Source: Thalia democratica
Lineage: Eukaryota
Reading direction: 5' to 3'
Assembly: GCA_965202585.1 (NCBI GenBank)
Contig: OZ241829.1
Coordinates: forward strand, 72,726,001-72,790,000
Length of the DNA stretch: 64,000 bases
Part shown: positions 4,243 through 63,457 of the stretch, in pieces
Layout of the letters: every line of letters starts with the position of its first letter
How positions within the stretch are numbered: position 1 is the stretch's first letter
Position numbers and translations under genes: made by a program
Notes under the pieces: generated by a model
The model's input: the letters and a program-made list of their open reading frames with translations, nothing else
What the model was told of the DNA's origin: nothing
The model's database searches: none

Positions 4243-6317
4243 GTTTACATGTAAATCGAGTTAAATAACTTACTGTGACTAACGGCTTAAATTTATTAGT
4301 TAGTTTTTATTTTCTTTAGGTTTTTATAATAACTAAGTTTAAACTGACTTGTCTTATTAAGTTAAATTCAAGTTCAATTTGTGCATACAACAAAAAAACT
4401 AAACCCTGCTCACAACTTTGCTTATGTAAATATTATAAAATGTTTTTGTTTAGTACTGGTACTGTCTCTTAAGTAAAATTATTTATAAGATGCTCAAAGT
4501 ATGAGTAAAATAAATAGCTTAGAAGTTTGACAACATCTACTTCATGCCTTTTTACAATATGCTCAATTAAATCTGACTATTTTAAAATCTACACTTCTTA
4601 GATCTTAACACTAACATCTTGACAAACTAAGTACGAACATCTTTAGTATCAATAACCGCTTTATTTACCACATACTTTAACTTTTTGTTTTAAAGTATAT
4701 CATAAAACAAGTAAATCATCTTAGGGATGGTAAACTTCTGTAGTCAAAGGACGAGATTTATACCAAGCTATAGTACCTTTATGTGCACAGTTGATGACTT
4801 TCAAACTAATTATTTAACACTTGATTACTTATTTGGTAATGTTTGCTTTGTAAGCTAAATACTTAACGACTATCATTATTTCTACAAGCATTTTGAAAAT
4901 TATTATAATAATAAATTAAGGCTTAAAAAATACAGTGAGTATGTTTTACAAACAGAAAGTCCTATAAAACGCAATACGTACTACATTTAAATCATCGTTA
5001 CTATAACCTATAATTAATTTTAAACAACGGTAACTTTTATTGCGGAGAAGTAGTCATTTATATCAACTTTTCCATGTTAGACCACAGCTCTATGTATCAA
5101 AATACACTAATCAATTACTCTTCTGATACTTTAAAAATGCAGCATTTAAAGTGATACAGACAGCTACTGAAAAGTTTAAAAAGACAACAACATAAATAAA
5201 ATTTTAGTCGAAAGTTTTTTACAAAAAAAATACACTTAAAACATACAACGACAAAATAAAATAAATAAAAATGACAAAATTTATGTCTAATAAAATGTAA
5301 TATTACAGTTTTCTGAATATGTTATACTGAATTGTTTCAAACGTTAATGTTTTCTTCTAACATAAAATTTATTATAGTTTGACTCTTTCGGGTAAACATT
5401 AAAAATAAAAATAATTTTTGAATATTTATACAAAAACAAATATTTCTAAATCTCATTATGTTAGAACTTGTGAGTTAGTATTAAAAAAAGTATATATTAA
5501 CAATATAATTAAAAAAAAATACTTTTTTTTTTCTTTCTTTTAAAAAAATACTTACAGGTAAAACAAATAAATTCTAAAACTAAAAACTATTAATAAGTGA
5601 TAAAATATAACGAAAATGAGTTTCATTTTTTCATCAATAGTTATACATTTTTGTTTAATTAAGTTCAAATACATATAAATTTGTAAATTATTTAAAGAAA
5701 TTTTAATTTTCAATCAAAATTAATGATTAAATTTACTTTTATGTCAGTAAAAAAATAACATATGTATTTACTTAACTTATACGTTCATTAGACTTAAAAC
5801 TGAGCTTAAAAATAAACTAATTTCATAGTGATTTAGCATTTTTCCTTCTACTTTACTAAGTGTTATGTTATGTCTTAAGTTTGTTAAAGTTCAAATCTTT
5901 CTAAAATAAGTATATTTATGTTTCGATTTTAATAAAAAAAAAAATTTTAATTTTTAATTTTGCTAAATTTTAGATATTGCAATAAAAATGAAGTATTTAC
6001 TCAAAAAACTACCAAATCAAAAGCTAAATAAAATAATAATGCTCAGTCTTAATCTTATAGCCTTTAAAAAATTTAAATATGAATATTCAGTATGTTTTAA
6101 TGTTTCTTAAAATAAAAAACAATAAAGTTTTTGTTTTGATAATAAAGTTTTAAAATAAAACATTATAAATTTATTTTTTTATGGATACTTTTTTAAAATA
6201 AAAGGCTGCTAGCTCATCTCTTTTATTTAAAAGTTATGGAAAAGTGTATTGTTAATTATTAATAATTTTATTAAAAACAATAGATTAATAATTTGTTAAC
6301 AGGTGAGTAGTTGTAAA

Positions 6318-7928
6318 ATGATAAAACTTCGATTAAGTTTTGATTTCAGTTTAAGCAAAGTTATTCTGGGTGTAGCTGGTATATCTGCTACTACTTTTGC
6401 ATTTCAGTATTTCATTTCAAAGAACAATAAATTAAACGGATTGTTAGAAAATTATTTTGGTTTGAAGAAAGGCATTTTAGTGTCAACTTTAGTTTCTTCA
6501 AAAACTTTGGTTGAGCCTGAAATCGGTAAAGATAATTTAGCTAAAAATGAGTTCAAAAACAGCAAAACTGAAAATGATTTAAAATTGTTTACAAGTAAAA
6601 GTAAAAGTGTTTCCCCCCCAGTTGTAAGTAAGGAAGTAATCCGAAAGATAACGGTAAGTAACCGTGAATTCAATTCAAAAAGTGATAAGTCAATACCAAA
6701 ATCTGATCCAAACTGCGAAGAAACTATTTCAAAAACCGAATCAAGCTATGAAAAGTCAGCCTCGAAAATCGACTCAAACTGTGAGAAGTTAGTATCAAAA
6801 ACTGAATTGAACTGTAAAATGCCAATCCCAGAAACTGATTTAGATTGTAGAAAATCAACTTTAAAGTTTGATTTAGACAACACAAACGTTGATGAAGGAA
6901 GTTTAAACCAATTGAAAAACAAAAGTACAGAATTTCATTACAGTAAAGTTTCAAGTGGGTTTAAGAAGATAGGTAACATAAAAGATGGTAGCCAATTTAA
7001 AATGACGGATAAAAATACTGATATGTTTAATAAGAATATTGATATAAACTATAAAAATTCAGTCTCAAAAACTGATACAAACTGCAAAAAGTCTATTTCA
7101 AAGTCTGTCCAAGACAAAACGAATATCAATAAGGAAAGTCAAGACCAATTGTCAATTAAAAGTGTAAAAATTCTTGACAATAAAAATATTATAGGAGCAA
7201 GTGCAAGTACATTAAAGGAGGATTTTCAAACTTTTGAGAAAAAATCTAACGTGCATATTAAAAAAAAGCCTGAAAATAATAAAGTTGAAAAACTTCGTAA
7301 TGAATTAAATGAGCAGTATTTATTTTTTGAGAAGACCTTAAAACTTATAAATGCTGAACAAAAAGCACATGAGAATAATATTGGTCAATTGGAGACAAAT
7401 ATTTCTGTTGCTTCATTGTATAAAGTAATATCAAACCGTAAAAATACAATTTTAGAAAATCTAAATAAACCAAAGGGTAACAGAATTTTGAAACAGTTTT
7501 TTCAAAGTATATTTAGTTTACAGCTAAAGGTTTGGAAAAAAGCGAGTGTATGTTTAAAATACAAAAGTAAATTATCCGATGAAAAAAATGAAAGTATTAA
7601 GGATACGTTTGATAATATAAAAGCTTTATTAGACATATGTGATGATACATTAAAAAACACTTTAAAAAGAATTAATATAGTGCTAAAGTATATTGATGAA
7701 ACTGATAAAATTGAAATAAATAATATTAATAAGTCACTTAATGAGATAAAAATGAATATAATGATGCAGAAGTTGAAAAATACATTCCAAGAGTTAGGAA
7801 AAGAAAATATTATTTTAGATGATGATATAAATGACATTTCAGATAGCTTGAAAAACTTGTTTTGCAAGTACAATCAAGTTTGTTCTAATTTCTACAAAAT
7901 TTTAGCTAAAGGTTTTATCACTAAATAA
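6318..7928 (+). CDS. Array copy B1, intact, 536 aa: signal-anchor leader, 11-aa repeats, 49-aa-type repeat, helical C-terminal domain
   Basis: Uninterrupted ORF. ATG 6318 aligns with the start of all paralogs (the ORF track uses an upstream GTG at 6303). Preceded by AACAG at 6298-6302 and followed by AATAAA at 8076. Confidence 0.88.
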   Translation: MIKLRLSFDFSLSKVILGVAGISATTFAFQYFISKNNKLNGLLENYFGLKKGILVSTLVSSKTLVEPEIGKDNLAKNEFKNSKTENDLKLFTSKSKSVSPPVVSKEVIRKITVSNREFNSKSDKSIPKSDPNCEETISKTESSYEKSASKIDSNCEKLVSKTELNCKMPIPETDLDCRKSTLKFDLDNTNVDEGSLNQLKNKSTEFHYSKVSSGFKKIGNIKDGSQFKMTDKNTDMFNKNIDINYKNSVSKTDTNCKKSISKSVQDKTNINKESQDQLSIKSVKILDNKNIIGASASTLKEDFQTFEKKSNVHIKKKPENNKVEKLRNELNEQYLFFEKTLKLINAEQKAHENNIGQLETNISVASLYKVISNRKNTILENLNKPKGNRILKQFFQSIFSLQLKVWKKASVCLKYKSKLSDEKNESIKDTFDNIKALLDICDDTLKNTLKRINIVLKYIDETDKIEINNINKSLNEIKMNIMMQKLKNTFQELGKENIILDDDINDISDSLKNLFCKYNQVCSNFYKILAKGFITK

Positions 7929-9800
7929 CTAAATATGTTGATATATAAGACTATAAAACATTCTGTTTCGTTCTTTTTTGCTGTTTCGTTCTGTTTTTTG
8001 TTTACTCGTATTATTAAAAAAATTTTGCTTTTGTTTATAAATTCAATGCACAACAAGTGTAACTCAATTTGGTAGAATAAATAATGGTTATTTAAAGACA
8101 TTTTCGTCACATAAGTCAACGATTACAAAAATATAAATACTTTAGATACTTTACATAAATTTAAATTATACTTAAATATGATCTTCAACATCGAGAATAT
8201 TTTCTTAAACTCAACATAATTTATAATTTAGGTTTAAGTAGAAATAAACATTTTAATCTCTAGTTATGATATATAAATATTATTAAATAACATCTTTGTG
8301 ATGATTCTTTAGTTAAGTTTGTTTATTTTAAATTTTAATTGTTTACTAACTAGGTTCCATAAAATTAAAACATATCATCTTAAAAATAATGGCATTTTGT
8401 GTAACTACGCTTATAACAATTAGAAACTACAGAAAATAAATAATCATAAAACAATAAACATTAATAGTTGTCAAAAAATCAAAACATACTTTTTCAAAAT
8501 GCATTTGATTTTAAAATGAGTAATTGAAATTTTAGTTTTAATAAGAATGATGTTAATTCAATATTTGCTTTATACTTAAATAGTGAGTTTGGTGAAAAAT
8601 AAAATAGTGTTTATAATTTTCATTTATTAAATATTATGGATAATTTATGGGCAGTATGATATGAAGCGAGTCGATATTGTACTAGTGTTCGAATAAAGAC
8701 AATAAAATTATTTTTTTAACACTGATCTAGGTTAAATTTATTTTCAAGAGTTATAATTGTTTAGTTATTAGTTTGAAGAGTAAACTATTGATAAATGCTT
8801 TGACTTCTTTTCTTACTTGACGTCTAAATAAATATATCTTTCTTTGTTTAGTTTATTCACAAACTAAATACAAGAATGATAAAGTATGTAATACAAAACA
8901 TATAAACTTACAAAAATAATAAAAGAATTAAATTTTTTATCCAAAACACTTTTTGAGACTTCGATTTTTTTGTTAATAGAAGCTGTATTATAAATGAATA
9001 TTTTTTACTGTCACAATATTGTAATATATACCCAGGTGTTCTTTTTTAATTAAATTCAAATTACCTTTGATATGTGCGCCCTATAAAAAACTATTTAAAT
9101 ACTGAATTTTCAGAACTTTATTTGCTATGTAACCATGGACAACTGTCTACTAAAGTGTTATAGTTTAAAAATTTACTCTCAGTGAAAAAAAATTAAATTG
9201 TTTAGTTTTTATCAAACAATACTTGTAAAAATCTTCTTATTATTATGTTTGATGGAACATGTAATAGTTATTTAAAACTGTTAAAAAATAGTTCTAAATA
9301 TATATTCATTTGTAAACTAGCACAACATTAAAATTCTGTTCTAAAGTACCATGCAGAATTTTGTAAGTAAATATTTAAAAACAAAAAGTATAATTTATTG
9401 ATTTATCTCAGACAAGGCTAAGTACGCTGAAAAATAAAGCTAATTTATTTAAAAAAATATTTTAAACATTAAGATAAGGATTTAAAAAGTTCATTTTTTG
9501 ATTCAATAAATAATTTAATCTTAAGGTATTTATATGTTTTTTTATAGAATTTCAATCAGTAGACTACAGGTATAAATTACTCATAAAAGTGTACAAAACG
9601 CACATCAAAATTTTTATCAAAGTTTAAGTTTTTCAGAGTTTTTTCGTATATAGGTAAGCTTCAAAATCTTAATAATTTATCTATTAAAAGATTTTTTTTT
9701 GATGTGTCAGTAGCTTTTTTAACGTTAGCCAAGAAATTTTAAAAATATAAATTAGTTTAAAGCTTCATGTTACAGGTGAGCAGTTAGTAAAACTTTTATA

Positions 9801-11517: not shown

Positions 11518-11519
11518 AA

Positions 11520-14494
11520 TATACTCAATTCAAAACGCTTTTGGTTTGTTATTTATCTTTGTTTTTGTTGTTTCTTTTCGTGTTTTTACGTTGTTTTGTT
11601 TTAAGAAAAACACTATTTTGTCGTTTTAGTAGTTAAGAGCACAATAAACATAGATAAATATAGTTAGCTTAATTACTTTAAATATAATTTTGAAAAGTTG
11701 AGTTTCAAAGACTTAGTCAGTGTAGTTAAATTTAAAATATACTATAGTGTTAGCTTTAACACTAATTACATTGCTAAAATTACAGTTAAACTTAAAGTAT
11801 TATAAAATATAAAGATGTTTAAAATTAAGTAACCAGATGAAGATTGATCTAAAAACTACAAGTTATTGTTATGATAAACTTGATTACATTGAATATACGA
11901 ATGAATCGTTACTAATGTTTTTCAAATGATTATTAAGCTTGACAAGTCTTATTAAAAATCCTTTACACCAAAATAATAAAATATTCTTTCCATAATAATT
12001 GAAAAGAACTACATGAATTAAAAATACTACTTGTATAAAAAAATATTTAATTAACCCTTTGAAAAATACTTTATGAATAAAAATTTGTTTTCGCAACTTT
12101 ATGCATAAAGCTCACTTCTTACTCTATAAAAAAATTATTATAAAATTTGTCTTTATACTTACAATTACTACCACGTACTTAAATCTTAAATTGATGGTAT
12201 AAACGAATCGATTTTCTATAACTAGGTTTCTTTATAAAACCTAAAGTTGCTGTTCAATGAAAAAATAAATAAAACTGTGGTTTTAATTTGTTTAACACTT
12301 TTTTTTTCTTCATTTGTCTTATCAGGAAAACAATATCTTTCAAAATAGTTTTTCTAGCTTGTAAGATATTTATTTTTTTACGGTTTTGTCAAAACTCTTC
12401 ACTAAATAACACTAAAAGAAAGAGTTTTTCAAATTTATTGTAAATAACAAAACTCAAACATAGTTTAGATCTTATGAATATAATAAAAGATAAGAATGGT
12501 TTTTATAAATAAAAATGCACCTTTTTACAAATTTGAATCTTAACAACAAGATTAGTAGCAACATCGGTTAGTTTTAGATTAACTTAGTCGAATGTAAAAG
12601 TAAATGTTGTTTTTAATAAAAAATTTTAAAAAATTGACACTCTTAAAAGAATAAAAAATCACAAACATACTACTATCAACAAAATAACTTAATACGTTTA
12701 GTTTCTTTATGATAACGACAAAAAATATATAGCTTTGAATTAAGACGACTAAAAAATGTTAAATAAAAACATTTAAGCTTTTAAATTCAAACAAATTACA
12801 TTTTGAGTAAAACTTCTTAAATTTAAAATAAACTGTAGAACTATTTTTCGAAATTCAATGAATTTATGAAATAACTATCACCGTCTTAACATTTAATACC
12901 TAGGAATTTTACCTTCACTGTTTTGTTAAACTGAAGTTTAACATAAAAAACACCATTAAGTTCGAGTAGTTTCGGACAACTATTACCGCAATCGTAAAAG
13001 GTAATGATAAATGTAAAAGCTTTACAAATTTATACTTATGCATATATTGACTGTTTAATCGTACGATGATTATCAATCCTTACAAGTTTTCTAACTAAAA
13101 TCAATAAACATTTTTCTTGCTCTGTTTAATTTCAAGGTTAAGTTTGTTGCTCAGAGCGTAATGGTAATTTGTACCTTTATTTTTTATTTGTATTCTTGAA
13201 CTATAAACTTTCTGATGGTGATTCAATTTGTTGGTTATAAGAGTGAGATAGTTTATATATTATAACTATATGTGTTAAAATAAGAATTAAAAAAATTAAG
13301 ATAATTAAGATATTTCTTATACTTCAATATATGGCCTCTCTATTAAATTTTATTTTTCATTTACTTGAAACATTATCAGTTTATAAGTTTCAATAAAATT
13401 TTAATAACAAACTACAAGTAATGATCATAATAGAACGATATATTTATAAAAAAAAAATCAAAAAGTAAAATTTCTTACGGTACGTTAAATCTTTTTTTTT
13501 TAAATAATGTTTTAACTGTTGAAATGTAGTTCCATAGTTTAAATTATTTCATTGATTTTTTATCTAATTAACCGATTAAATCAAAACATTTTTATACTTT
13601 TAATAGTATTCAAACTTTTTAACCTGACTTTTTACATAAAAAAAATAACAAAAAAAATTAAAATTTTATTTAACGTTTAGTTATCGTTTGCTTACGACAA
13701 CATTTTTTAGTATATCAGTTATTATTAAACCCGACGTTAATTTTTAGTAACAAAATTATTAATTATATAATTTACCTTAATTACGAACTTTTTTTTCAAA
13801 ACAGCTTAACAAATTACAATATAAATGAAAAATCAAAGTTCCATAGTACTTTTCATATTAAAATTCAAAAAAAGTTTTAAGTGTTATAAATAACTATTAT
13901 AAACAAACTTATCTGATTAGTTCTAAATACATACAGAACTGAAAAAACAGTATCTAATTAAATCTAAACTTATAGCTAATTAATTAGCTATAAGTTTATT
14001 AAATCTAACTATATTTTCACAAAATATATCCGCTGTTTCAACTAAACACCTATCAATTTACTATTTCTCCGTATAAGAACTTGTTAAAAAGTGTTATTAG
14101 TGGCCTTCTCCGAGAAAAGAAAAACACAGATTTAGTTTAAATATTTAACGTTGCTCTGCAAAACTTAGATAGATTTTTGAAACTTTTCATTTAATTTTAA
14201 TAAATAGTATTTGACTTATTTATTTTATACTGGCTTATAAATACTTGTACAAAAGATTCTTGTTATAAACGTTCTACAAACTCGTATTTAAGAAGAAAAG
14301 AACTTAAGCTTAAAATTTAATTTCCTTATTTGATAACCTAATAACTAATAAAATTTTATTCAATCAACGATATTTACTGATGTGTCACTAGTCTTTATAA
14401 CAGTAATCACAAACATCTTTTCAAATCTTATTTACTCATAACCTTTTCATTAAGGTTTAAAATTACAAGAAAGAACTTTATTAAAACAGGTAAA
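11520..14494 (+). repeat. C-to-D intergenic spacer, present in three copies (also ~24910-27772 and ~59370-63457)
   Basis: Colinear shared blocks, e.g. ttagtagcaacatcggttagttt, gtgattcaatttgttggttataagagt and tatctaattaaccgattaaatcaaaacatt, occur in all three spacers. Confidence 0.92.
13965..13998. repeat. Perfect 34-bp palindrome
   Basis: TAAACTTATAGCTAATTAATTAGCTATAAGTTTA equals its own reverse complement. It is absent from the paralogous spacers near 27320 and 62950. Confidence 0.9.
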
Positions 14495-20983: not shown

Positions 20984-22843
20984 TTTGGGGTCGGTCGTTT
21001 TATAAGTATCCTTTTATGGGTATCCTAGTTGCAACAAAATGATACCCATAATAAGACCGACCAGAAGGTGTCCTTTTAAAAAATTGTACAATTTTATATT
21101 GATGTTACGTATTTTTTGTTTTTTTTTTTACAATTAAAAATTAAATTGTTTTTACGTATATTTTTTCATAAGTTTATTCAATTTCTTAAACTTAAGTTTA
21201 ATTAAAATGACTTTGATAACTTGTTTAGACTGTTCAGATGTTAAATTTTAAAGTAAACCCATGAAAAGGCGAAACACAGCTTTATAACTTTTTATGGGTA
21301 TCCTTTTAAATTTAGTTTAAATATCTCATATTAACTTTTATTTAAGTTCAAGTTTAACATTAATTAAAGGCTACTTAAGTTAAAAAAATTTTTTTTTTTT
21401 TTAAACTTCTATCAAAACTGCAAAATATAATTCAAGTATTTCTCTAAAAACATAACTAAAAACGAGATATGACTTTATTTACTTTACAAGCACAACTTAG
21501 TTGATAAAGCTAAGGTTTTCCAACTAATAAATTTTTTTTAAATTATATAAACTGCGTTGCCTGACCCCGTAGTAGATTTAGATAATAAACCGCGTTCGTC
21601 GGCTCCACCTAAGAGTCGTGCAGTAGCGTCAGTCGACCGTGACAACAGATCTTATTAATATACCTCAGAAGCTTTAGTTGTATGCTTTATAACTAAATAA
21701 ATGCTGCTTAAAATATAGAGCTTTAACCAAATTATGATTTAAAACTCTTTTAAAATGAATTTATGGTAATTAACTTGCCTGGTAACAATTTTTCAAAGTA
21801 AAACTTTATGCTGATTTAAAAAAAAATCTATAACTAGACTTAATAAATATGTATATTCAAATAATTGTCTTTTACTTACAAACTGTTCTTGTTTATAAAT
21901 TTCAGAAGCTTGAAATGTAAAAAAAATAACAACGTTTAAGAATAAAAGGAATTTATGCATTTCCTCAGATGTAGTTATTTTGCTAGAATTTAAACAAACA
22001 GTAAAATTTTACAAAAACTAGTGGAAAAAAAGTAATTAAATTTGGTCAAAATGACTTAGTTAGTTTTTGTAAAAGTATTTACCTAATTTTAGTTATGTTT
22101 TGTATTACAGACTTTATCATTTTTGTATTAGTTTTTGAATAAACTTAACAAAGTAAGATATATTTATTTAGTTTTGACATTTTATGTATATTAAATTTAC
22201 AAAAATGTCTAATAATAAACTAATTAAACAAATCAAAAAAAATAGTATAACTTTGTTTGCTTGGTAAAATGTTTTTTAACAAAATAAATGCTTGGTTTAG
22301 ATGTTACAACTAAAACTACATAAAGATTGCTTTAAAAATGAAGTGAAAATTCTGAAGTTTCCACTTTATTCCGATTTAACTTAAAATAACTTTTTACTAA
22401 CGAACTGTAACAACTGTATATATTTTAAATAAAATATAGCACATTTTAAGAGGCCTAGCCAAAACTTTTTGCACATTGTAATAGCATTTTATACATAAAC
22501 AACAAACTTTAAAACTTGGCTGAGACATAGATATTTAAATAATTTTTATCATGAAATCATAAAAAAGTATTTCAAATTCTATTTCTCAAAAGATTTTAAA
22601 GGCTTGGCCAGAACTTTTTAAACTAAAGTAGCATTTATCAAGTAACAAATAAGCTCTTATACATATAAAATTTTAAATTGAGCTAAAAGACAAATTTTAA
22701 ACATTTTTAAAGCATTTAAATGAACATAATATACCATAAATAATTTTCTAATAGTAATTTTTTTTAGATTAACTGTATAAACTTTATTACAAACAATTGA
22801 CTAGTATTCTACTTACAGGTTAGTAGTTCGTAAAACTGGTAAA

Positions 22844-24907
22844 ATGATAAAACTTCCTTTAAGTTTTGATATCAGTTTGAGCAAAGTTATTCTGGGTGTA
22901 GCTGGTATATCTGCTACAATTTGTACATCTCAGTATTTCATTTCAACGAACAGCAAGCTAAAAGGCTCTTTAAAGAACGATGTTGTACAAAATAAAACAG
23001 ACTCAAATAAAGACAATAAAGTTTCAAACGTATTTTCCGCCAAACAAACAGTTGAGTCAAAACTCAATAAAGAAAAAACTGCTAGTGATAATTTGAAAAA
23101 CAGCAAACCTAAAAATGGCTTGAGAGTTTGGATCGGAGCTAATGCAAGTACTTCTAATGACGATTGTCAAAATGTTAAGAAAAAGTTCAAAGTGGATATT
23201 TACAAAGAGCTTATAAGTAAAGGAGGACAACATCAATTGAATGATGGAAGAACAAAAGTTTTTAACAAAAAAGCTAGTTTTAAACCTAATGAAAGTACAT
23301 CTAATGACGATTTGTCAACTTTTGAGGAAAGTTCTCAAGTGGATGTTAGAAAAAAGCCTGTAAATGAAGGAAGTCAAAATCAATTAAAAGATGAAAGTAT
23401 AAAAGTTCTTAACCAGGAAATAATTTTAGGTAATAACGCAAGTACTTCTAATGACGACTTGCAAACTGTTGAGGAAAAATCTAAAGTGTATACTAAAAAG
23501 GAGCGTGTAAATGAAGGAAGTCAAGATCAATTTAAAGATGAAAGTATAAAAGTTCTTAATCAGGAAACTAGTTTTGAAGCTAATGCACATACTTCTAATG
23601 AAGACATGCAAACTGTTAAAGAAAAATCTGATGTGAATATTAAAAACGAGACTGTAAATGAAGGAAGTCCAGACCATTTGAAAGATGAAAGTATAGAAGC
23701 TCTTAAGCAGGAAGTTATTTTAGGAGCTAATGCAAGTACTTCTAAAGACGACTTGCAAACTGTTGAGGAAGAGTCTAAAGTGGATATCATAAAGAAACCT
23801 CCTTATAGAGGAATTTTAGACCAATTGAATGAAAAAAATATAAAAGCTCTTGATGATGAAAATAGTTTAAAAGGTAATGCAAATACTTCTAACGATGATT
23901 TGCAAAATGTTGAAGAAAATTCTAATGTGGATATTAAAAACGAGACTGTAAACGAAGGATGTCAAGATCAATTAAAAGACGAAGGTACAAAAGCTGTTGG
24001 TAAAAAATCTAATTTTAAATGTAATGCAAGCTCATCTACTGATTATTTGCAAACTGTTGAGGATAAAACTAAAGTAGGTAATAAAAAGGAGTTTGTAAAT
24101 GAAGAAATTCCAGAGCAAAGTATACAAGTTCTTGGTAATGAAGCTAGTTTAATAGGTAATGTAAGTACTTCTAATGATGATTTGCAAACTGTTAAGGAAA
24201 ACTCTAAGAAGAACAAAAGTAAAACTTCCGATAACAAAATTGGTAAATTTCGTAACGATTTACTTCAGCAGCAACGTTTTTTTGAGGAGACTCTTAAACT
24301 AATAAAAATTGAAGAAAATGAACTCGACCAAAACCTCACTCAGCTGAAAAAGGGAACATCAGCAGTTTCTTTGTATAATAAAGTTTGCAATCGTCAAATT
24401 GAAATCCGTGAAAATAAGACCGACCAAAACTACAATGAAAATATGAAAGCTTATTTTAAAGATGTTTGTGATTTAAAGGAGAAAGTATGGAAAGAAGCGG
24501 GAAATAAACTTATATATGCCACTACTAAGTTATCAAACAAAAAACAAAAAAATCTCAAGGAAAAGTTAGATTGTATTCAAAATGTGTTAGAAAAATGTTG
24601 GGGCTTGGTTGAAATTAATTTGAATACAATTAAATTTTTGCTTGAATATTTGGAAGTTGATGAATCTAAAACAAAACTTTCCTTTGAAATTTCTGATGAT
24701 TTGTACAATGAAAATAAGGAACATCAGAAGAAAATGCACATAATGTTTGATGGTTATGAAAATAAGTTTAGCGGTGATGATTTATGTTCAACTTTAGAAA
24801 CTATAGAGAATAACTTTACTTATTTGTTTGGTAAGTTTTACTTTATTTGTAAAGATAGCTATAAAATTTTAGTTGAAGATGAGTATAAAAAATATGATGA
24901 AAATTAG
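22844..24907 (+). CDS. Array copy C2, intact, 687 aa, with an expanded 49-aa repeat tract
   Basis: Uninterrupted ORF with the family leader and C-terminal domain. TTACAG at 22813-22818 upstream and AATAAA at 25029 downstream. Confidence 0.9.
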   Translation: MIKLPLSFDISLSKVILGVAGISATICTSQYFISTNSKLKGSLKNDVVQNKTDSNKDNKVSNVFSAKQTVESKLNKEKTASDNLKNSKPKNGLRVWIGANASTSNDDCQNVKKKFKVDIYKELISKGGQHQLNDGRTKVFNKKASFKPNESTSNDDLSTFEESSQVDVRKKPVNEGSQNQLKDESIKVLNQEIILGNNASTSNDDLQTVEEKSKVYTKKERVNEGSQDQFKDESIKVLNQETSFEANAHTSNEDMQTVKEKSDVNIKNETVNEGSPDHLKDESIEALKQEVILGANASTSKDDLQTVEEESKVDIIKKPPYRGILDQLNEKNIKALDDENSLKGNANTSNDDLQNVEENSNVDIKNETVNEGCQDQLKDEGTKAVGKKSNFKCNASSSTDYLQTVEDKTKVGNKKEFVNEEIPEQSIQVLGNEASLIGNVSTSNDDLQTVKENSKKNKSKTSDNKIGKFRNDLLQQQRFFEETLKLIKIEENELDQNLTQLKKGTSAVSLYNKVCNRQIEIRENKTDQNYNENMKAYFKDVCDLKEKVWKEAGNKLIYATTKLSNKKQKNLKEKLDCIQNVLEKCWGLVEINLNTIKFLLEYLEVDESKTKLSFEISDDLYNENKEHQKKMHIMFDGYENKFSGDDLCSTLETIENNFTYLFGKFYFICKDSYKILVEDEYKKYDEN
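23132..24205 (+). repeat. Coding tandem repeat, 147-bp/49-aa unit, about 7.5 copies
   Basis: Units of the form NEGSQDQLKDESIKVLNQExxLxxNASTSNDDLQTVEEKSKVDIKKExV read directly from the translation. Confidence 0.92.
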
Positions 24908-27772
24908 AATACAATGAATTCAAAACGTTTATGGTTTGTAACTTACTTTGTTTTTGCTGTTTTTTTTTGTTTGTTGCAGTTTTTTTTGTTACAAGAATTT
25001 TTTTTGTTGTTTTAGTAGTTAAATGCAAAATAAATATAGATATATATATAATTAGCTTATTTGTTTGAAATATAATTTTGAGAAGTTTAGTTTCAAAAAC
25101 TTTGTGAGTGTAGTTAAAAATATACTGGAGTATTAGCTTTAACACAAAATTCATTGCTTAAATTACAATTAAATTTAAAGTTTTTAAAATATAAAGATGT
25201 TTAAAAATAAGTTACTAGATGAACATTGATCTAAAAAACTACAAGTAATTATTACAATAAACCTTTTTTACATTAAATAGAAATATGAATCGTTACTAAC
25301 GTTTTTAAAATAAAAATTATGCTTGACCAGTCTTATTAAAAATCCTTTACGCCTCGTTTACATGTTTAACTACATGATTTAAAACTACTTGAGTAGGAAA
25401 TATTATCTAATTAATCGTATAATAAATACTTTGTGTACGGGAAACTCAAATGTTTATTTTCGCAGCTAAATTCATCAAGCTCAGTCCTTTTTTAATAATA
25501 AATTATTTTTAAATGTGTCTTTATACTTAAACTTTAGAACAACGTATCTTAATCTTAAGTTGACGAATTAAACGAATGGATTTTCTATAACTAGGTTTCT
25601 TTATTAAGCTAAAGGCAATGTTTAATGAAAAAATAATAAAACAGTAGTTATATTTTGCTTAACACTTTTTATTGTCTACATTTGACATACCGAAAAAAAA
25701 ATATCTTTCAAAATAGTTTTATAACTTTTAAAATAGTTAATATATTTATGTTTTTGTCAAAACTCTTCACTAAATATCACAAAAAAAAAGATTTTTTCAA
25801 ATTAATTATAAATAACTAAACTAAAACATAGTTTAGATATTACGAATATAATAAAAGAGAAGAATGATTTTTATAAATAAAAATGCATCTTTTTTTCAAG
25901 TTTGAAACTTAATAACAAGATTAGTAGCAAAATCGGTTAGTTTTGGATTAACTTAGTCGAATGTAGAAGTAAATGTTGTTTTTTAATAAAAAAGCAAAAT
26001 AAATTAACTTTCTTATAAGAATAAAAAATCACAAACATAACACTATCAAAATAATAACTTAATACGTTTAGTTTGTTTATGATAACGACAAAAAATATAT
26101 ATATAGCTATGAATTAAGACTAAAATATGTTAAATAAAATTATTTAAGCTTTTAAATTCAAACAAATTACATTTTGAGTAAAGTTTCCTAAATTTAAAAT
26201 AAATTATAGAATTATGTTTTTTTGAAATTCAATGAATTAATGAAAATGATTATCAACGTCTTAATATTAAAAACTAGGAATTTCACCTCCACAATTTTGT
26301 TAAACTGCAGTTTAACATAAAAAAAAACACTATCAAGTTTTATTAGTTTTGGACAACTATTGCCGTAATCGTAAACGGTTATGAAAATTAAAAATAGTTA
26401 CAAATTTATACTTAAGCAAATATTGATTAGTTTGTGTACTATGATTATCAATCCTTACAAGTTTTCTTATTAAAATCAACAAATATTTATCTTGCTCTTT
26501 TTTATTTTTAAGTTTAAGTTTGTTGTTCAGAACGTAATGGTATTTTGTACCTTTATTTTTTTTGTATTCTTGTATTATAAATTTTCTGTAAGTGATTCAA
26601 TTTGTTGGTTATAAGAGTTAAGAATTTATATATTATAAGTTTATGTGTTAAAATTACAAAATTTAAGATAATTGAGATATTTCTTATACTTCAATATATG
26701 GCCTCTCTAATAATTTTTATTTTTCATTTACTTAAAACATTATTAGTTTATAAGTTTCAATAAGTTTTTAACAACAAACTACAAGTAATTGTCATAATAA
26801 AACGAAATAGAAAAAAAAAATCAAAATGTAAACTTTCTTACGGTACGTTCAATCAAATGTTTTTTAATAATGTTTCAACTGTTTAGATATAGTTTCATAG
26901 TATAAATTACTTTATTGATTTTTTTATCTAATTAACCGATTAAATCAAAACATTTTAATATTTATACTAGTATTCAAACTCTTAAGTCTGACTTAAAACC
27001 TAAAAAAATAACAAAAAGAGTTAAACTTATATTTAATGTTTGCTAATCGTTTGCTAATGACAATATGTTTTTAGTTTCTCAGTTATTATTAAACCTTACA
27101 TTACTTTTTATTTACAATATTATTAATTATAAAATGTACCTAAAATATGAACTTTTTTTTCAAAACAGCAAAACAAATTACATTGTAAAAAAAAATCAAA
27201 GTTCCATTGTAGTTAAAAAAATTCAAAACATTTTGAAGTGTTTTAAACAATTTCATAGACAAACTTATCTGATTAATTTTAAATACATAAAGAACTGAAA
27301 AAATAGTAAATGCCTAAAAAACTGTTATAAGTTTTATTAAATCTAACTATGTGTTCATAGAACATATTTACTGATTTTAATTAACAATTTACTACTCTAC
27401 CGTATTAATTTTTTTTAGAAATATTTAACATTGCCTTGAAAACTTTGGTAGATGTTCAAAACTTTTCATTTATTAAAATAAATTGTATTAGATTTATTCA
27501 TTTTATATTTAATTATAAATAACTGTATAAAATATTCTTGTTATAAACGTTCTACAAATTCGTATCACTCAAGAAAAGAACTAATGCTTTAAAGTTAATT
27601 TCGTTATTAGATAACCTATAAACTTATAAAATTTTGTTCAATAAACGATATTTACTGATGTGTCACTAGTCTTTATAACAGTAATCACTAACATGTTTTT
27701 AAACTTTATTTACTCATAACCTTTTCATTAAAGTTTAAAATTACAAGAAAGTACTTTGTTAAAACAGGTAAA

Positions 27773-35618: not shown

Positions 35619-36134
35619 TACTAATTAAATAAAAATTTAACTATATTTTGTCATGCTGGTCATAATAATGAATATTATAGCTCTATTTATCCATAAACAA
35701 TTTTAAAAGTTATTAGTTTCAAATGAATTCATGTTCGAGCAATAAGTTATTGATAACGACTTTATTAGTTTACATTTTTGCTGAAATTTCATAGATTCAG
35801 CATTCATTATTTTTTTTACATTTTTTTTTTTTTGAACTTTTATCGTTTAAAGAACGGTTATCAGTGTTTAAATTCTGAGCAAATTTAAATGAAAGATATA
35901 TTTTCTATAAGTTTTTTAAAAAATGCATAAATAGTTTTATATAAATAGCTTTTATATAACTTAACGAAATTTATGAAAAAAGAAAAATACTTTTCAAATT
36001 TATTTATACTTTTTAGATACTGAATAATTGGTGTTGTTGCTTGAATTTTATCAAATTTATTTAATGAATATATTTCATTTAATAGCATATTTTAGTTTTA
36101 AGTTGCAAGTCAATAGTATAGTATAAATGTTAAA

Positions 36135-46300: not shown

Positions 46301-46478
46301 CTTAAAAATAAACTTTTACAGTTTTATTTTATTTTAAATATTTTTATCGGAAATAAATACTAGCTTACGTCTTTATTTAAAAGTTTTTAAAAGTTTTATC
46401 GTTTTTCTTGTAACGTTTTACTTAAACGAGTTAATTAACAATTTAAATTACAGGTGAGTAGTTAGTGAAGTTAGTAAA

Positions 46479-47894
46479 ATGATAAAAGTTCGATTAAGTT
46501 TTGATGTCAGTTTAAGCAAAGTTATTCTGGGTGTAGCTGGTATATCTGCTACAATTTGTGCATTTCAGTATTTCACTCCAAAGAACAATAAACTAAAAGG
46601 CTATTTGAAATATAATGTTGTACAAAATAAAATAGACTTTAAGAAAGACAATAAAATGTCAAGTTTAGTTTCTGCAAAACCAAACGTTGAGCCCAAACTC
46701 ACTAAGGATAAATCTGCTAAAGATGACACCATAAACAGCAAACCTGAAAACAGCTTAGATAAATTTCAAACTCAAAGTAAAGGCTATATATGTTTTAGTA
46801 AACCAGTCTTCAGAAAAAGATCAAATTCTAAAGGTGAATACAATTTAAACTGTGAAAGATCAATCTCAAAGTCTGATTTAAACTGTAAAAGACAAATCTT
46901 AGAAAAGGAAGCTTACAAAGCGAGTATTAACAAAGAAAGTTTAAACCTATTGGTAGAAAAAAGTGTTAAAGTTCTTAACAAAAATGTTAATTTGAGATCT
47001 AATAAAACTACTTCTGATGACAACTTGCAAGCTATTGGACAAAAATCTAAAATGTGTAGAAAAAACGAGCCTGTTAATGAAAAAAGTCCAGACCAATTAA
47101 AAGAAGAAAATATAAATGTTCTTGATAAGGAAAATAGCTTAGAAGCTGATACAAGTATTTCTAAAGACGATTTGCAAACTATTGAGGAAAAATCTAAAGT
47201 AGATATTAAAAAATTGCTTGTAATTGAAGAAAGCCCAGACCATTTGAACGATGAAGTTATAAAATTTCTTGACAAGAAAGCTAGTACAAAAGGTAATACA
47301 AGTACTTCCAATGATAATTTGCAAACTTATAAAATTAAGCCCAAAGTGGATGATAAAAAGAAGCCTGAAAATAATAAAGTTACAAAACTTCGTAATGATT
47401 TAAATCAGCAGCACAAGTTATTTGTAGACACTTTGAAATTAATAAATGATGAACTAAAAGAGCTGAAGAATGACCTTGGTCAATTGAACAACATTATTTC
47501 CATTGCTTCATTATATAATAAAATATTGAATCGTAAAATGGAAATCCTTGAAATTTTGAATAAACAAAAATGTAATGAACGCTTGAAACAGTTTATCTCA
47601 AATATTTTCAGTATACAGCTAAAAGTTTGGAAAAAAGCCAGTAACCGTTCGATACTTTATGGTAAAAATACTATTGAAAGAAATAAAAACATTATTGATA
47701 TGTTTGCAATTGTAGAGGCTATTTTATCAAATATTAAGGACTTATTTACGACAACTTTAAAAAGAATTAGCTTTATGCTGAAGTATATGGATGAAATAGA
47801 CAAAAACAAAACAATTATTATCTATTATACACTAGAAAAGCTTAAAAAGGATGATGATGAATGTCAAAAGATGTGTTTAAATACATTGCGGTAA
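46479..47894 (+). CDS. Array copy A2, 471 aa, shortened by one premature TAA (homologous frame continues to 48026)
   Basis: cgg TAA ttt gca aac aligns with tgt GAA ttt gca aac in A1. 43 further sense codons (FANLNSSL...SYRILVEDQKK*) match the family C-terminus. Three 49-aa repeats. Confidence 0.75.
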   Translation: MIKVRLSFDVSLSKVILGVAGISATICAFQYFTPKNNKLKGYLKYNVVQNKIDFKKDNKMSSLVSAKPNVEPKLTKDKSAKDDTINSKPENSLDKFQTQSKGYICFSKPVFRKRSNSKGEYNLNCERSISKSDLNCKRQILEKEAYKASINKESLNLLVEKSVKVLNKNVNLRSNKTTSDDNLQAIGQKSKMCRKNEPVNEKSPDQLKEENINVLDKENSLEADTSISKDDLQTIEEKSKVDIKKLLVIEESPDHLNDEVIKFLDKKASTKGNTSTSNDNLQTYKIKPKVDDKKKPENNKVTKLRNDLNQQHKLFVDTLKLINDELKELKNDLGQLNNIISIASLYNKILNRKMEILEILNKQKCNERLKQFISNIFSIQLKVWKKASNRSILYGKNTIERNKNIIDMFAIVEAILSNIKDLFTTTLKRISFMLKYMDEIDKNKTIIIYYTLEKLKKDDDECQKMCLNTLR

Positions 47895-53074: not shown

Positions 53075-54190
53075 AAATTTTAATTGAAACTTTTTTACCA
53101 AAACATTACACTTAAAACATACAACAACAAAATAAAATAAATAAAGATGAAAAAATTTATGTCTGTATTTATTTATTAAAATGTAAAAGTAAATTTTAAT
53201 TTGTTATACTGAATTATTTCAAACGTTAACGATTTCTTGTAACATAAAATTAATTATAGTTTGACTCTTATGGGTAAAACGTTAAAACTAAAAAAATATT
53301 TTTGTATATTTTTACAAAAACTAATATTGCTAAATGTCATTATGTTAAAACTTGTGAGTTAGTTTTAAAAAAAGTATATATTTACAATATAATTAATAAA
53401 ATCTTTTTTTTTTTTTTTTTTTTTAATACTTACAGGTAAAAAAATTAATTCTAATGCTTAAAACTACTAATAAGTGTTAAAATATAAGGCATATAAGTTT
53501 AATTTTTTCATTAATAGTTATACATTTTTGTTTCATTTAAGTTCGAATACATATAAATTTGTAAATGCTTTAAAAACTTTCAATTTTTAATCAAAATCAA
53601 TGATTAAATTTACTTTTCTGTCAGTAAAAAAATGATGTATGTACTTTTTTAACTTATATGTTCATTTGACTTAAAACTGAGCATAAAATTTAAACTAATT
53701 TCATAGTGATTTAGCATTTTTCCTTCTACTTCACTAAGTTATGTCTTAAGTTTGTTAAAATTCAAAACTTTTTCAAAATAAGTAATTTTATGTTTCGATT
53801 TTGATTAAAAAAAAAACTTATAAATTTCGGATTAATTTTGCTAGATATTATGTATTGCAATAAAAATGTAGTATTTATTCGAAAAACTACTAAATCAAAA
53901 GCTAAATAAAATAATTATTCTCAGTCTTAACCTTTAAAAAATTTAATTATGAGTATTCAGAATTTTTTAATGTTTTTTAAAATAAAAGAAATTAAGGTTT
54001 TTGTTTTGATAATAAAGTTTTAAAATAAACTGTTATAAGTTTAGTTTTTTATGGATACTTTTTAAATCTGCTAGCTTATGTCTTTAATTTAAAAGTTTTG
54101 AAAAAGTTTATCGTTAATTATTGTCACGTTTTATTAAAAACAATAAATAATTAATTTATTAACAGGTGAGTAGTTAGTACCACTTGTAAA

Positions 54191-55755: not shown

Positions 55756-57627
55756 CTAAATGTGTTAATATATTATACTATAAAACGTTCTGTTTCGTTC
55801 TTTTTTGCTGTTTCGTTCTGTTTTTTGTTTACTGGTATTATTACAAAAATTTTGCTTTTGTTTATAAATTCAATGCACAATAAGTGTAACTTAATTTGTT
55901 AGAATAAATAATGGTTATTTAAAGACATTTTCGTCACATAAGTCAACCATTACAAAAATATAAATACATTAGATACTTTACATAAACTTAAGTTATAATT
56001 AAATATGATCTTCAACATCGAGAATATTTTCTTAAACTCACATAATTTATGGTTTAGGTTTAAGTAGAAATAAACATTTTAATCTTTAGTTATGATATAT
56101 AAATATTATTAAATAACATCTTTGTGATGATTCTTTAGTTAAATTTGTTTATTTCAAATTTTAAATGTTTACTAACTAGGTTCCATAAAATTAAAACATA
56201 TCATCTCAGAAATAATGGCATTTTGTGTAACACGCTTATAACAATTAGAAACTACAGTAAATCAATAATCATAAAACTATAAACATTAATAGTTGTCAAA
56301 AAATCAAAACATGCTTTTTCAAAATGCATTTGATTTAAATTGAGTCATTAAAATTTTTGTTTTAATTAGAATAATGTTAATTCAATATTTGCTTTATAAT
56401 TTACAAATAGATGAGTTTGATGAAAATAAAATAGTGTTTATAATTTTCATTTATTAAATATTATGGATAATTTATAGGCACTATGATATGGAGCGGGTCA
56501 ATATTGTACTAGTATTCGAATAAAGAAAACAAAGTAATTTTTGACACTGATCTAGGCATAATTTATTTTCATGAGTTATAATTGTTTAGTTATTAGTTTG
56601 AAGAGTAAAATATTGATAAATGCTTTGACTTCTTTTCTTACTTGAAATCTAAATAAATATATCTTTCTTTGTTGAGTTTATTCACAAACTAAATACAAGA
56701 ATGATAAAGTATGTAATACAAAACATATAAACTTACAAAACTAATAAACAATTAATGTTTTTATCCAAAACACTTTTTGAAACTTGGATTTTTTTGTTAA
56801 TAGAAGCTGTCTTATAAATGAATATTATTTACTGTCACAGTATTGTAATATATACCTAGTTGTTCTTTTTTTATTAAATTTAAATTACCTTTGATATGTG
56901 CGCCCTTTTAAAAACTATTAAAATATTGAATTGTCAGAAATTCAATTGCTATGTAACCATGGACAACTGTCTACTAAAGTATTATAGTTTTAAAATTTAC
57001 TCTCAGTAAAAAAAAGTAAATTGTTTAATTTTAATCAATTACTACTTAAAAAAAACTTCTTATTATTATATTTAAATGTACATTTAATAATTGTTTAAAA
57101 CTAAATTAAAAAAATAGTTCTAAAGATATATTCATATAAAAGCTAGCACAACTATCAAAATCTGTTCTAAAGTACCATGGAGAATTTCGTTAGAAAATAT
57201 TTAAAACAAAAAGTATATTTGATTGATTTATCTCAAAAAAAGTAAAGTACGTTGAAAAAAATGAAACAATTTAAATAAAAAAAAAATTTAAACATAAAGA
57301 CAAAGGTTTAAAGATTTAATTTTTTATTTTATAGAATAGTTTAAATCTGAAGGTTTATCTGTGTTGTTTTATAAAACTTCAATCAGTAGACTACCGTTAT
57401 AAGTTACTCATAAAAGTGTACAAAATGCACATCAAAATGTTTTTAAACGTATGAGTTCCATAGTATTCATTTTGTTTGAAGGTAAGCTTTAAAATCTTAG
57501 TAGTTTATCTGTTTAACATTTCTTTAGTGTGTCAGTAGCTTTTTTAACGTTAGCAAACAAAATTTTAAAAAAGATAAACTACTTTAATGCTAAATGTTAC
57601 AGGTGTGTAGTTAGTAAAACATGTAAA

Positions 57628-59597: not shown

Positions 59598-60734
59598 CAG
59601 TGGTTCCCAACCATTTTGATGTCCCACACCCCTAAAGTCTCTTAATTTGATTTCGCACCCCTAACACTATATGCTATAACTATTTATTAATAATTTGATT
59701 ATAAAATCATTGGTTTGATTAATTAATAATTTGTATTTTAATTCTTATGATAGTGTACTATATTATCAAAAATAAAATTCTTGAAAACTTATAAAACATA
59801 GCAAACTATATTCGAACAAGTTTTATCTTTTTTTTATAAGGTAGAAAACATCAGCTGTTATAAATTAAGAAAATGTTAAGTTTTATTTACAAAAGTATTA
59901 GCAGCTAGGAATTTTCAAAATAATAAAGGTTTGAGTTAAGATTTTTAAAATTTAAAAGATATGTATAAAAGCAAATACAAATTAAAATGCTTGCTTACAA
60001 CATAAATAAAAAAAAAGTAGATTGAAAAAGGTAAAGTATTTAGGTTCAAAAAAGGAATGAATAGAAACAAAGTTGATGCATAGAATACTTTTGCTGATCT
60101 ATTAAAATTGGTTTTACTATAGCTAAAAACATACAGTAATTGCTGTGAACTTTACAATTTACTGATGTTAAATCTTTAAGCACCACTTTCTGCACAACGA
60201 AGCTTAATAAAAGAATATATTATAAATGTAATAAACTTAACAGAACCAATTTAGAACCAGTTTTAAACAATTAATGGCCACTTAAGAAACTAGAATATTT
60301 AAAAAATAGATGATTAAAATTCACAAGTGTAAAACTCTAAGAAAGCTTTACTGAAGTGTTAATTCTAAACTAACAGCTATTAAATGAAATTAGTAAAATG
60401 AATTTACTTCTAAAAAAAGGGCTCTTGCTCTATGACGTATTAGTAAAATTAATTTATTCAGAAAATAAGCGCCAACTTCTTTTTATAAAAAAATGCACTT
60501 TTTGTGAGAATGTGAAAGTGAAAATCTCGTTATTTATAATTCAAAAATTAAAAGCCATTCCGCACCCCCAAGGGGTGTGAGCTAGACTTGTTAAAATGCT
60601 AACAGTTACTATGGTAATTCAGCAATGAAGCGTATAAACTTTGGTTTGTTTTAAGTTGGTAATTTCACGCTCGAGTAAACAAAGCAGAGCTTTATAACAT
60701 GTCTGGTGTGAGCACCCCTGGTTGGGAACTCATG
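59598..60734. mobile_element. Non-autonomous hAT-type transposon
   Basis: TIRs CAGTGGTTCCCAACC / GGTTGGGAACTCATG. TSD TACTATAG / TACTATAC. The paralogous site near 11740 has a single tactatag followed by tgttagctttaac. Confidence 0.9.
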
Positions 60735-63457
60735 TACTATACTGTTGGCTTTAGCACTTATTACATTCCCAAAATTCCAGTTAAATTTAAAGTATTATAA
60801 AATATAAAGATGTTAAAAAATAAGTAACCAGATGAAGGTTGATCTAAAAAACTTAGCTATTGTTACAATAAACCTTTTTACATTAAATAGGCGAATAAAT
60901 CGTTACGTTTTTCAAATGATTATTATGCTTGACAAGTCTTCTTAAAAATCCTTTACGCCTAAATAATAAAATATTCTTTTCAAAATAATTTATTATTTAT
61001 TATTTTAATTTATAAGAACTACATGATTTTAAATTACTACTTGTATAAGAAAAATTATTTCATTAATCCTTTAAAAAATATTTTATGAATAAAAAACCAA
61101 ATGTTTGTTTTCGCAACTTTATGCATAAAGCTCAGTTCTTACTCAATAAAGAAATATTTTAAAATTTGTCTTTATACTTACAATTTATACTAACAATTAC
61201 AACCACGTACTTTAATCTTAAATTGATGAATTAAACGTATGGATGTTATTTAACTAGGTTTCTATATAAATCTGAAGGTAATGTTTAATGAAAAAAAAAA
61301 ACAAAAAAATAGCTATATTTTGCTTAACACTTTTTATTATCTACATTTGTTAAAACAGAAAAAAATATCCTTGAAAATAGTTTTTCTAATTTTTAAAACA
61401 GTTAATTTATTTATGTTTTCGTCAAAACTTTTCACTATATAACACTAATAAAGAGTTTTTCAAATTAATTATAAATAACAAAACCGAAACAGTTAAGATC
61501 TTATAAATATAATAAAATATATGAAGGAGTTTATAAATCAAAATACATGTTTTTTTTACAAATTTTAAATTCTATAACAAAATTAGTAGCAACATCGGTC
61601 AGTTTTGGATTAAGTTACTCAAAAGTAAAAGTAAATGTTGTTATATAATAAGAGAGAAAAAGAAAATAACACTCAAAAAATAATAAAAAATCACAAACAT
61701 ATTACTATCAAAAAAAAAATTATGTTCAGTTTCTGAACGAAATTGACAAAAAATTTATAAAGCTATGGATTAAGACTGAAGAATGCTAAATAAAGTATTT
61801 AAGCTTTTAGAGAAAAATTTTTAACTTAAAATAAACTGTAGAACTATTTTTTAAAATTCAATGGATTTGATAAAATAATTATCTATATCTAAACGTTTTA
61901 AAACTAGGAATCACACCTCAACAGTTTTGTTAAACTGCAGTTTATCATAAAAAACACGACTAAGTTTGAGTAGTTTTGGACAACTATTGCCGTAATCGTA
62001 AACAGTTATGAAAAAATAAAAACAATTACAAATGATACTTAAGCAAATATTGATTAGTTTGTGTACTATGATTATCAATCCTTACAAGTTTTCTAATTAA
62101 AGTTCATAAATATTTTTCTAGCTCTTTTTTATTTTTAAGTTTAAGTTTGTTGTTCAGAACGTAATGGTATTTTGTACCTTTATTTTTTTTTTATATTCTT
62201 TAAGTTCAAATTTTCTGTAAGTGATTCAATTTGTTGGTTATAAGAGTTAAGAATTTATATATTATAACTTTATGTATTACAATTACAAAATTAAGAAAAT
62301 TAAGATATTTCTTATACTTTAATATATGGCCTCTCTGGTAGTTTTTATTTTTAATTTACTTGAAACATTATCAGTTTATAAGTTTCAATAAATATTGAAC
62401 AAGAAACTGCAAGTTGTGATCGTAATACAACGTTATAATTATAATAACATTTTTAAAGCATAAAATTTTTCGGTACTTTTAACCAATATTTTTCAAAAAT
62501 GGTTCAATTGTTGAGATAGAGTTTCATAGTTTAAATTATTTCATTGATTTTTTATCTAATTAACCGATTAAATCAAAACATTTTAACACTTGTACTAGTA
62601 TTCAAACTCTTTAATCTGACTTATAACCTAAAAAATAAAAAAGATAATTAAACTGATATTTAATGTTTGCTGATCATTTACTTATGACAATGTTTTTTTT
62701 AGTATTTCATTTATTATCAAACCCTACATTACTTTTTATCTACGATACTTTTAATTATATAATTTACTTAAAATATGAACTTTTTTTTACAAAACAGCTT
62801 AACAAATTACATTGTAAATAAAAAATCAAAGTTCCATTGTAGTTTAAAAAAAAATTATAATTATTTTGAAGTGTTTTAAACAATTTCATAGACAGACTTA
62901 TCTGATTAATTTTAAATACATACAGAACTGAAATAATAGTATATGCTTCAAACTGTTATAAATTTTATTGAGACTAACTATGTGTTCATAGAACGTATTT
63001 GCTGATTTTAACTAACATTTTACTACTTTTCCGTATTAAAATTATTTTTGAACTATATTTAGTGGCCTTCCCCGAGAAAAGAAAAAAAAAACAGATTTAG
63101 TTTAAGTATTTAACAATGCCTTGAAAACTTTGGTAGATGTTTAAAACTTTTCATTTATTTTAATAAATGGTATTAGATTTATTCATTTTACATTTAATTA
63201 TAAATACTTGTACAAAATACTTTTGTTATAAACGTTCTACAAATTCGTATCACTTATGAAAAGAACTAATGCTTCAAAGTTAATTTCTTTATTAGATAAC
63301 CTATAAACTTATAAAGTTTTATTCAATAAACGATATTTACTGATTTGTAACTAGTCTTTACAACAGTATTCACTAACATGTTTTTAAATCTTATTTACTC
63401 ATAACCTTTTCATTAAGGTTTAAAATTACAAGAAAGTACTTTATTAAAACAGGTAAA

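Follow-up and report, generated by a model that had tools for sequence, protein, structure and literature searches.

In this work, we describe a family of tandem genes in the pelagic tunicate Thalia democratica (genome of 801.8 Mb, 75% AT), together with a splice-site-like motif, TTNCAG/GTNAGTA (the slash marks the junction between its halves), which lies shortly ahead of their start codons. The stretch analysed, hereafter the window, is 64,000 nucleotides (nt) long, free of runs of N, and corresponds to positions 72,726,001 to 72,790,000 of contig OZ241829.1 (assembly GCA_965202585.1). A tblastn search detected 11 family copies in the window, all on the plus strand and each made of a single collinear open reading frame (ORF), with ATGs at 1649, 6318, 9801, 14495, 22844, 27773, 36135, 46479, 54191, 57628 and 63458. 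At the whole-genome level the family forms an array of about 1.16 Mb (contig C5, 72.43-73.59 Mb), in which plus-strand copies extend as far as 73.04 Mb and minus-strand copies begin at 73.14 Mb, the same-strand stretches being long; further copies were found on one unplaced contig. About half of the 35 copies read are broken, each by a single nonsense or frameshift mutation, at positions differing from copy to copy. Spacers, measured from the end of an ORF to the next ATG, range from 1,873 to 9,061 nt; an AATAAA or ATTAAA hexamer is found 10-148 nt past each ORF end, and 2-13 AATAAA hexamers occur inside each ORF.

The product of copy A, 536 amino acids (aa) long, is predicted to contain an N-terminal membrane helix, followed by about 280 disordered, repeat-rich residues and by a C-terminal helical bundle. 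The latter corresponds to the C-terminal 215 residues (residues 320-536, window 7275-7928) and is modelled with a pLDDT (predicted local distance difference test) of 85-95. The family protein matched no Pfam family and an atlas search gave no lead; the bundle has neither a sequence match in PDB nor a PDB fold match at E <= 0.001. Exact-protein look-ups with two window ORFs gave no match, and no family relative was found in a scan of Joint Genome Institute (JGI) metagenomes. ENA assemblies, for the most part with the label marine metagenome (Tara Oceans), are the source of all 13 database relatives, which all read as genomic DNA. The family is one of orphan, intronless, fast-evolving tandem genes.

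The motif was found, 25 nt (in one copy 15 nt) ahead of the ATG, in six of the 11 window copies. In copy A the junction TAACAG/GTGAGTAG (6297..6310; this and all the following features are on the plus strand, unless otherwise stated) matches the complement of U1 small nuclear RNA (snRNA) at 10 of 11 positions and, owing to a 10-nt deletion in the 5' leader, lies 15 nt from the ATG of an intact ORF (6318..7928). In copy C, TTACAG/GTTAGTAG (22813..22826), with the donor hexamer GTTAGT also employed by Hsp90 introns of this genome, precedes by 25 nt an intact ORF of 687 aa (22844..24907), and in copy B TTACAG/GTGAGTAG (46448..46461) lies at the same distance from an ORF of 471 aa (46479..47894). 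A second copy A, with TAACAG/GTGAGTAG at 54160..54173 and its ATG at 54191, is frameshifted near codon 113. Of the two F copies, the first (TTACAG/GTGAGCAG, 9770..9783, ATG 9801) is frameshifted at codon 42, while the second (TTACAG/GTGTGTAG, 57597..57610, ATG 57628) has a broken ORF and a 5' leader holding an ATG-TAA.

A first-pass annotation of the stretch, made from the sequence by inspection, had called CAG/GT sites with the G of CAG at 6302, 9775, 22818, 46453, 54165 and 57602; all six are present as cited, 15-25 nt ahead of a family ATG. The same annotation had grouped with them the CAG/GTAAA-ATG of the D copies (14489, 27767, 63452). These sites do exist, but they are not the same site: in the alignment the motif of the other copies falls opposite ACAAGAAAGT in the D copies (ACAAGAAAGA in the leader at 14465..14494), their CAG/GT lying 17 nt further down, where the other copies read CTGGTAAA. 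In the first D leader the ancestral AG/GT is lost and the new CAG/GTAAA lies at 14487-14494; in the second (27743..27772) it lies at 27765-27772, followed by an ORF of 516 aa (27773..29323) which is intact despite the loss of the ancestral AG/GT; the third (63428..63457) has the same layout as the second. Copies A1 and E had both been described as carrying degenerate junctions. For E, whose site GCAAGTCAAT (36105..36114) precedes the ATG at 36135, this holds true, the copy being decayed. The A1 junction, AAAG/GTTAGT (1620..1629, ahead of the ATG at 1649), belongs to a truncated copy, but an entire subfamily, intact genes among it (L015, 517 aa), regularly has its junction in this form.

The offset of the motif is not peculiar to the window, as it holds in at least 44 of 51 copies when the rest of the genome and the marine metagenome relatives are included. 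Across 33 unique 5' regions, positions -31 to -18 from the ATG read T30 T28 A27 C27 A33 G28/G32 T30 N A30 G26 T30 A29 G21, each number giving the regions that carry the base. The donor half, MAG/GTNAGTA, has C or A at position -3, never T, as found in donors, and is free at +3. Its match to the U1 complement, for which the textbook U1 sequence was used, extends to 10 of 11 positions in 13 of the 33 copies (mean 8.6); the window background for a match of at least 10 is 6e-5 per position. In the acceptor core, TTNCAG/G, the TT at -6/-5 is present in 28-30 of the 33 copies, and the AG, if a shift of 1 nt is allowed for, in all but one of 38 (37), the exception being a broken copy. The 3' and 5' splice consensuses are thus juxtaposed and both conserved, as in the sequence definition of recursive splice sites. 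To this extent the dual splice-site reading originally proposed finds support in the sequence, since both halves match consensus and both are constrained; its use at the level of the array is not supported, as discussed below.

Within the window, the pattern WACAGGTKWRY has 6 matches against 1.08 expected, and none of 100 shuffles reaches 6. Most of this excess can be put down to the common descent of the copies, and it is constraint that provides the proper test. By parsimony on 16 alignable copies, each of the 11 motif columns underwent on average 0.82 changes, and those of the remaining leader 1.24, while the neutral comparison gave 1.96 for columns -400..-201 and 2.0 for third positions of codons 34-50, the motif being 2.4 times slower. 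Five more metagenome copies have kept CAG/GTNAGTAG, while neighbouring leader bases have diverged. The exact 14-mer recurs at the same offset in 12 more copies of the array; genome-wide it has 41 matches, of which 18 fall within the family, the control giving 9. Several broken copies (ATGs at 9801, 57628 and 36135) carry deviant versions. From these patterns the motif appears to be a selected compound signal. An E-box, CAGGTG, was considered as an alternative identity and ruled out, the sixth base being G in just 14 of 33 copies, and no conserved RNA structure including the motif was found, the only candidate being a 6-bp hairpin within the coding sequence, not backed by covariation.

Two side observations concern conservation around and outside the motif. 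In the region of all copies equivalent to 6318-6416, third positions of codons 1-33 show 0.79 changes per column, compared with 2.0 for codons 34-50; the first 100 nt of the ORF are either constrained at the nucleotide level or homogenised by gene conversion. Outside the family, genome-wide, the N of TTACAGGTNAGTAG is A, T or C in every match, and G in none; 19 of them are on the plus strand and 4 on the minus strand, an asymmetry which may stem from the search tool.

Sequence conservation is not limited to the 5' leader. Within the A/B superfamily, identity upstream of the CAG is 0.70-0.87 down to -125 and about 0.55 to -390 (0.45-0.6 further upstream of the conserved block). The most conserved upstream block, CTAGCTTAC (46360-46368 and its A/B equivalents), lies about 115 nt ahead of the ATG with an identity of 0.87, and is a candidate factor-binding site of a family promoter. 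In copy B it is followed, within 46360..46383, by TATTTAAAAG at -105 from the ATG, a TATA-like box and candidate promoter element. Because of this conservation, and because copy C shares about 90% identity over -300..+400 with an ortholog from a metagenome, every copy has an upstream region of its own; in all likelihood each is transcribed as a separate unit, its conserved upstream region measuring 125-400 nt. The ortholog resides on a Tara Oceans contig (L037:1-2903) which is unrelated to copy C outside these limits; its ORF is just 297 aa long, so that repeat content differs, and it may come from a close relative or from another population. A 70-nt exon running from an upstream AG (about -96) to the motif was also considered and rejected, that AG being missing in L009, L013, L018, L023, the copy at 36135 and L037.

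Spliced-leader addition, a possibility raised in the first-pass annotation, is plausible. The 16-nt Ciona leader (PMC7986045) followed by GT occurs 358 times in the genome, against 0 in a reversed control, and an organism with a Ciona-type leader may well have acceptors near the ATG. Neither the Hydra SL-B1 primer sequence (PMC3273482) nor the Ciona Sm-site pattern after the leader was found in the genome. Many of the leader copies head repeated retroelements. One such repeat (L041:1300-1518; G000:C1:34991248-34991466), present in at least 40 copies with 98-99% identity, starts with the full 16-nt leader, followed by GTTTTG and, 22 nt later, by an ATG. This repeat represents a retroelement of recent age, the RNA of which had undergone trans-splicing, and it shows both this spacing and a GT next to the leader in RNA-derived copies of this genome. 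The same leader-tagged locus had been considered as a route to a parent gene, and was discarded as a repeat of at least 40 copies.

As to the acceptor itself, the genome's Hsp90 genes use an AAG acceptor, and use the donor hexamer GTTAGT twice. An ATTAAY element is conserved 14 nt ahead of the family AG and would fit a branch point, although the genome is 75% AT; in copy B it is represented by the candidate AATTAAC (46433..46439, yUnAy-like), with conservation of T 31/33, T 31/33, A 25/33 and A 27/33. Upstream ATGs are distributed unevenly around the AG: 14 lie in -50..-27 and 2 in -25..-4, both of the latter in broken copies (Fisher p = 0.0045, the copies not being independent). Such a depletion past the AG fits a mature 5' end at or near it, set either by leader addition or by transcription start. 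Data from Ciona also speak for a leader acceptor: the distribution of outron lengths there has its maximum near 100 bp, and a trans-spliced gene is driven by a TATTTAAG box (PMC4691747, PMC3074122).

We favour, at a probability of about 0.4, the view that the copies are autonomous intronless genes, whose AG would be a leader acceptor and whose GTNAGTA would be a selected U1-binding element within a 25-nt 5' untranslated region (UTR). According to this model, each copy would be transcribed on its own from its conserved upstream region, and the gene-derived part of the mature messenger RNA (mRNA) would start at the AG, most likely the acceptor for the 16-nt leader. GTNAGTA would stay in the short 5' UTR and pair with U1 snRNA, rather than act as an ordinary donor. 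Bound U1 might help to define an acceptor with a weak pyrimidine tract, where no downstream intron or donor exists, and might also shield the internal AATAAA hexamers of the AT-rich ORF from premature polyadenylation. U1 has been linked both to acceptor definition and to poly(A) suppression in vertebrate, viral and nematode systems.

A number of observations weigh against this model. All family sequences found read as genomic DNA, neither a run recorded as RNA nor a transcript contig having been found; three sequencing runs aligned to the window consist of DNA contigs, which are collinear with it over 22500-22901. No retrocopy of the family tagged with the leader was detected, a pattern joining the leader to the family ATG giving 2 unrelated matches against 4 in the control. 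The pyrimidine fraction in the 17 nt ahead of the acceptor core, 0.52, equals the background, although six real Hsp90 acceptors span 0.41-0.82, and a distance of just 14 nt separates the candidate branch point from the AG. A genuine TATA-like box at -105 would leave room for an outron of no more than about 50 nt. Two lineages whose ORFs are open, namely the D lineage, with its intact 516-aa ORF, and L038, have each lost the GT, so that U1 pairing would not be indispensable. Much of the similarity between copies reflects recent ancestry or gene conversion. Finally, vertebrate cells usually suffer harm from mature mRNAs that retain a 5' splice-site motif.

Among the alternatives, the one deserving most attention, although we regard it as unlikely, is that the motif marks a transcription start. 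The A of TTACAGG would be the +1 of an initiator (CA), with a TATA-like box about 30 nt upstream, and the 25 nt would be an unspliced leader containing downstream promoter or translation elements. The A at -27 is in fact the sole invariant base of the motif (33 of 33), preceded by C in 27 of 33 copies; start sites in Ciona are mostly CA or TA (PMC4691747); TATTAAAAAC or TATAAATTA occurs 28-33 nt upstream in several subfamilies, and the depletion of ATGs downstream of the site is accounted for equally well. Yet in a genome with 75% AT such AT-rich boxes abound, the pyrimidine-purine step is replaced by AA in six copies, and position -2 is A, where a pyrimidine is usual. Moreover, a transcription start leaves unexplained both the 10/11 match to U1 and the fact that +3 alone is free. 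The U1 match also bears on the possibility that the motif has no function, being a passenger in a leader homogenised by recent duplication and gene conversion. Many copies are recent, and the conservation of third positions in codons 1-33 (0.79 vs 2.0) is what gene conversion predicts; nevertheless, chance would produce a 10/11 match in a block of 28 nt with a probability of only about 0.002, the metagenome relatives keep the motif while neighbouring leader bases diverge, and the pattern of free and fixed positions is motif-specific. We consider a mere passenger improbable.

The remaining alternatives require the GT to be used in splicing, or copies to be transcribed together. As the first-pass annotation had suggested, a leader or shared 5' exon could be joined at the CAG, and the rebuilt donor either left, so that the ORF is kept, or used again to reach the CAG of the next copy, one copy of the array being thereby chosen. 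The motif corresponds to the recursive consensus YNCAG/GTRAGT with both halves constrained, leader addition would rebuild AAG/GTNAGTA, long stretches of copies share one strand, and the D lineage, having lost the old AG/GT, has a new one 17 nt away. Against this, no shared 5' exon for the array was found, strong pyrimidine tracts are lacking, and the spacers (1.9-9 kb) contain AATAAA or ATTAAA 10-148 nt past each ORF, while the association of deviant motifs with broken copies (9801, 57628, 36135) ties the motif to the expression of its own copy. More generally, own upstream regions, spacers of 1.87-9.1 kb, the strand switch of the array and the death of about half of its copies argue against both a single long transcript with a shared 5' exon and operons of the Ciona type. 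Choice from a shared exon finds no support here, and recursive use of the site in general seems to us improbable too; its leader-primed version, in which the donor rebuilt at the CAG moves the leader to the next CAG upon read-through, leaving one ORF per transcript, is slightly more doubtful still. Equally doubtful is the other proposal of the annotation, polycistrony resolved by trans-splicing, here considered for blocks of the array such as A-F-D, with leader trans-splicing at each CAG. It agrees with the presence of the leader in the genome, with the common strand of the copies and with the duplication of A-F-D as one unit, but the gaps involved, 1.87-3 kb within blocks and 1,873-9,061 nt overall, far exceed those of Ciona operons, which are below about 100 bp (PMC7986045), a conserved upstream region is found ahead of the downstream copies as well, and F is dead in both blocks. 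Least probable of all would be a true donor, with a short non-coding first exon ending at the CAG and spliced to TCAG at +31, or to a later copy, yielding a non-productive or non-coding isoform. The donor half is the strongest signal and TTTTGATGTCAG at +20..+31 is acceptor-like; however, splicing to +31 (a 57-nt intron) would remove the ATG and leave no in-frame start, L009, L020 and the intact D copy have no AG at +31, and the segment has no indels and varies in a codon-like manner.

The consequences differ according to which account holds. If the AG takes the leader and the U1 site is functional, the family would feature a family-wide 5' splice-site signal supporting intronless trans-spliced genes in a chordate relative, and would allow a direct test, outside vertebrates, of whether U1 aids the choice of trans-splice acceptors or protects AT-rich messages against early polyadenylation. 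A recursive site would amount to a new way of picking one gene from an array. Should the 5' leaders instead be capped and unspliced, the motif would merely be a conserved 5' UTR element, an ordinary finding. An acceptor near the ATG is likewise ordinary for a tunicate; for a constrained, family-wide, near-perfect U1 site adjoining it in intronless genes we found no description.

Some features of the window concern its organization rather than the motif. A higher-order repeat is evident, as the block 5199-16561 recurs at 53075-64000: the three-copy block A-F-D has been doubled as a unit, about 48 kb apart, with a C-D pair (22770-29944) lying between. The F copy is dead in both blocks, with lesions at different sites. 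Between array copies, on the minus strand, lies a cold-shock-domain ORF (17866-18156, Pfam E 1.5e-14), in which the first 12 domain residues are missing and no acceptor is visible; it is probably a gene fragment or a retrocopy.

The family may be compared with four known systems. Protocadherin and UGT1A clusters likewise have variable units arranged in tandem on a single strand, and each unit may have a promoter to itself. Their donor, however, ends each variable coding exon and joins it to shared downstream constant exons, whereas the donor-like site of the family precedes a complete collinear ORF and no constant exon is seen. Drosophila ratchet points, vertebrate recursive splicing (RS) sites and dual-specificity AG/GURAG sites share with the motif the juxtaposition of 3' and 5' consensuses, a zero-length exon and purifying selection; known recursive sites lie deep in the long introns of single genes and have strong pyrimidine tracts, while the family site is found once per tandem copy, 25 nt ahead of the ATG of an intronless ORF. 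Non-splicing U1 sites, as in telescripting and in the silencing of the 5' long terminal repeat (LTR) poly(A) site by the major donor of human immunodeficiency virus type 1 (HIV-1), offer a different likeness: the family, too, has a strong promoter-proximal U1 site ahead of many poly(A) hexamers, in genes which lack introns to recruit U1. Such U1 activity is known from vertebrate cells and viruses, and tunicates, as well as sites adjoining a trans-splice acceptor, fall outside its known range.

The spliced-leader acceptors of tunicates, as described in Ciona intestinalis, are a further term of comparison: the same 16-nt leader is present in the genome, the AG lies a few tens of nt ahead of the ATG, a branch-point-like element precedes it by 14-18 nt (by 18 nt in the troponin I gene of Ciona, PMC3074122), and a short AT-rich outron is possible. 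Unlike those acceptors, the family sites are known from DNA sequence and have a pyrimidine content at background level. They also differ in carrying a near-perfect U1-type site, which abuts the AG and is conserved throughout the family.

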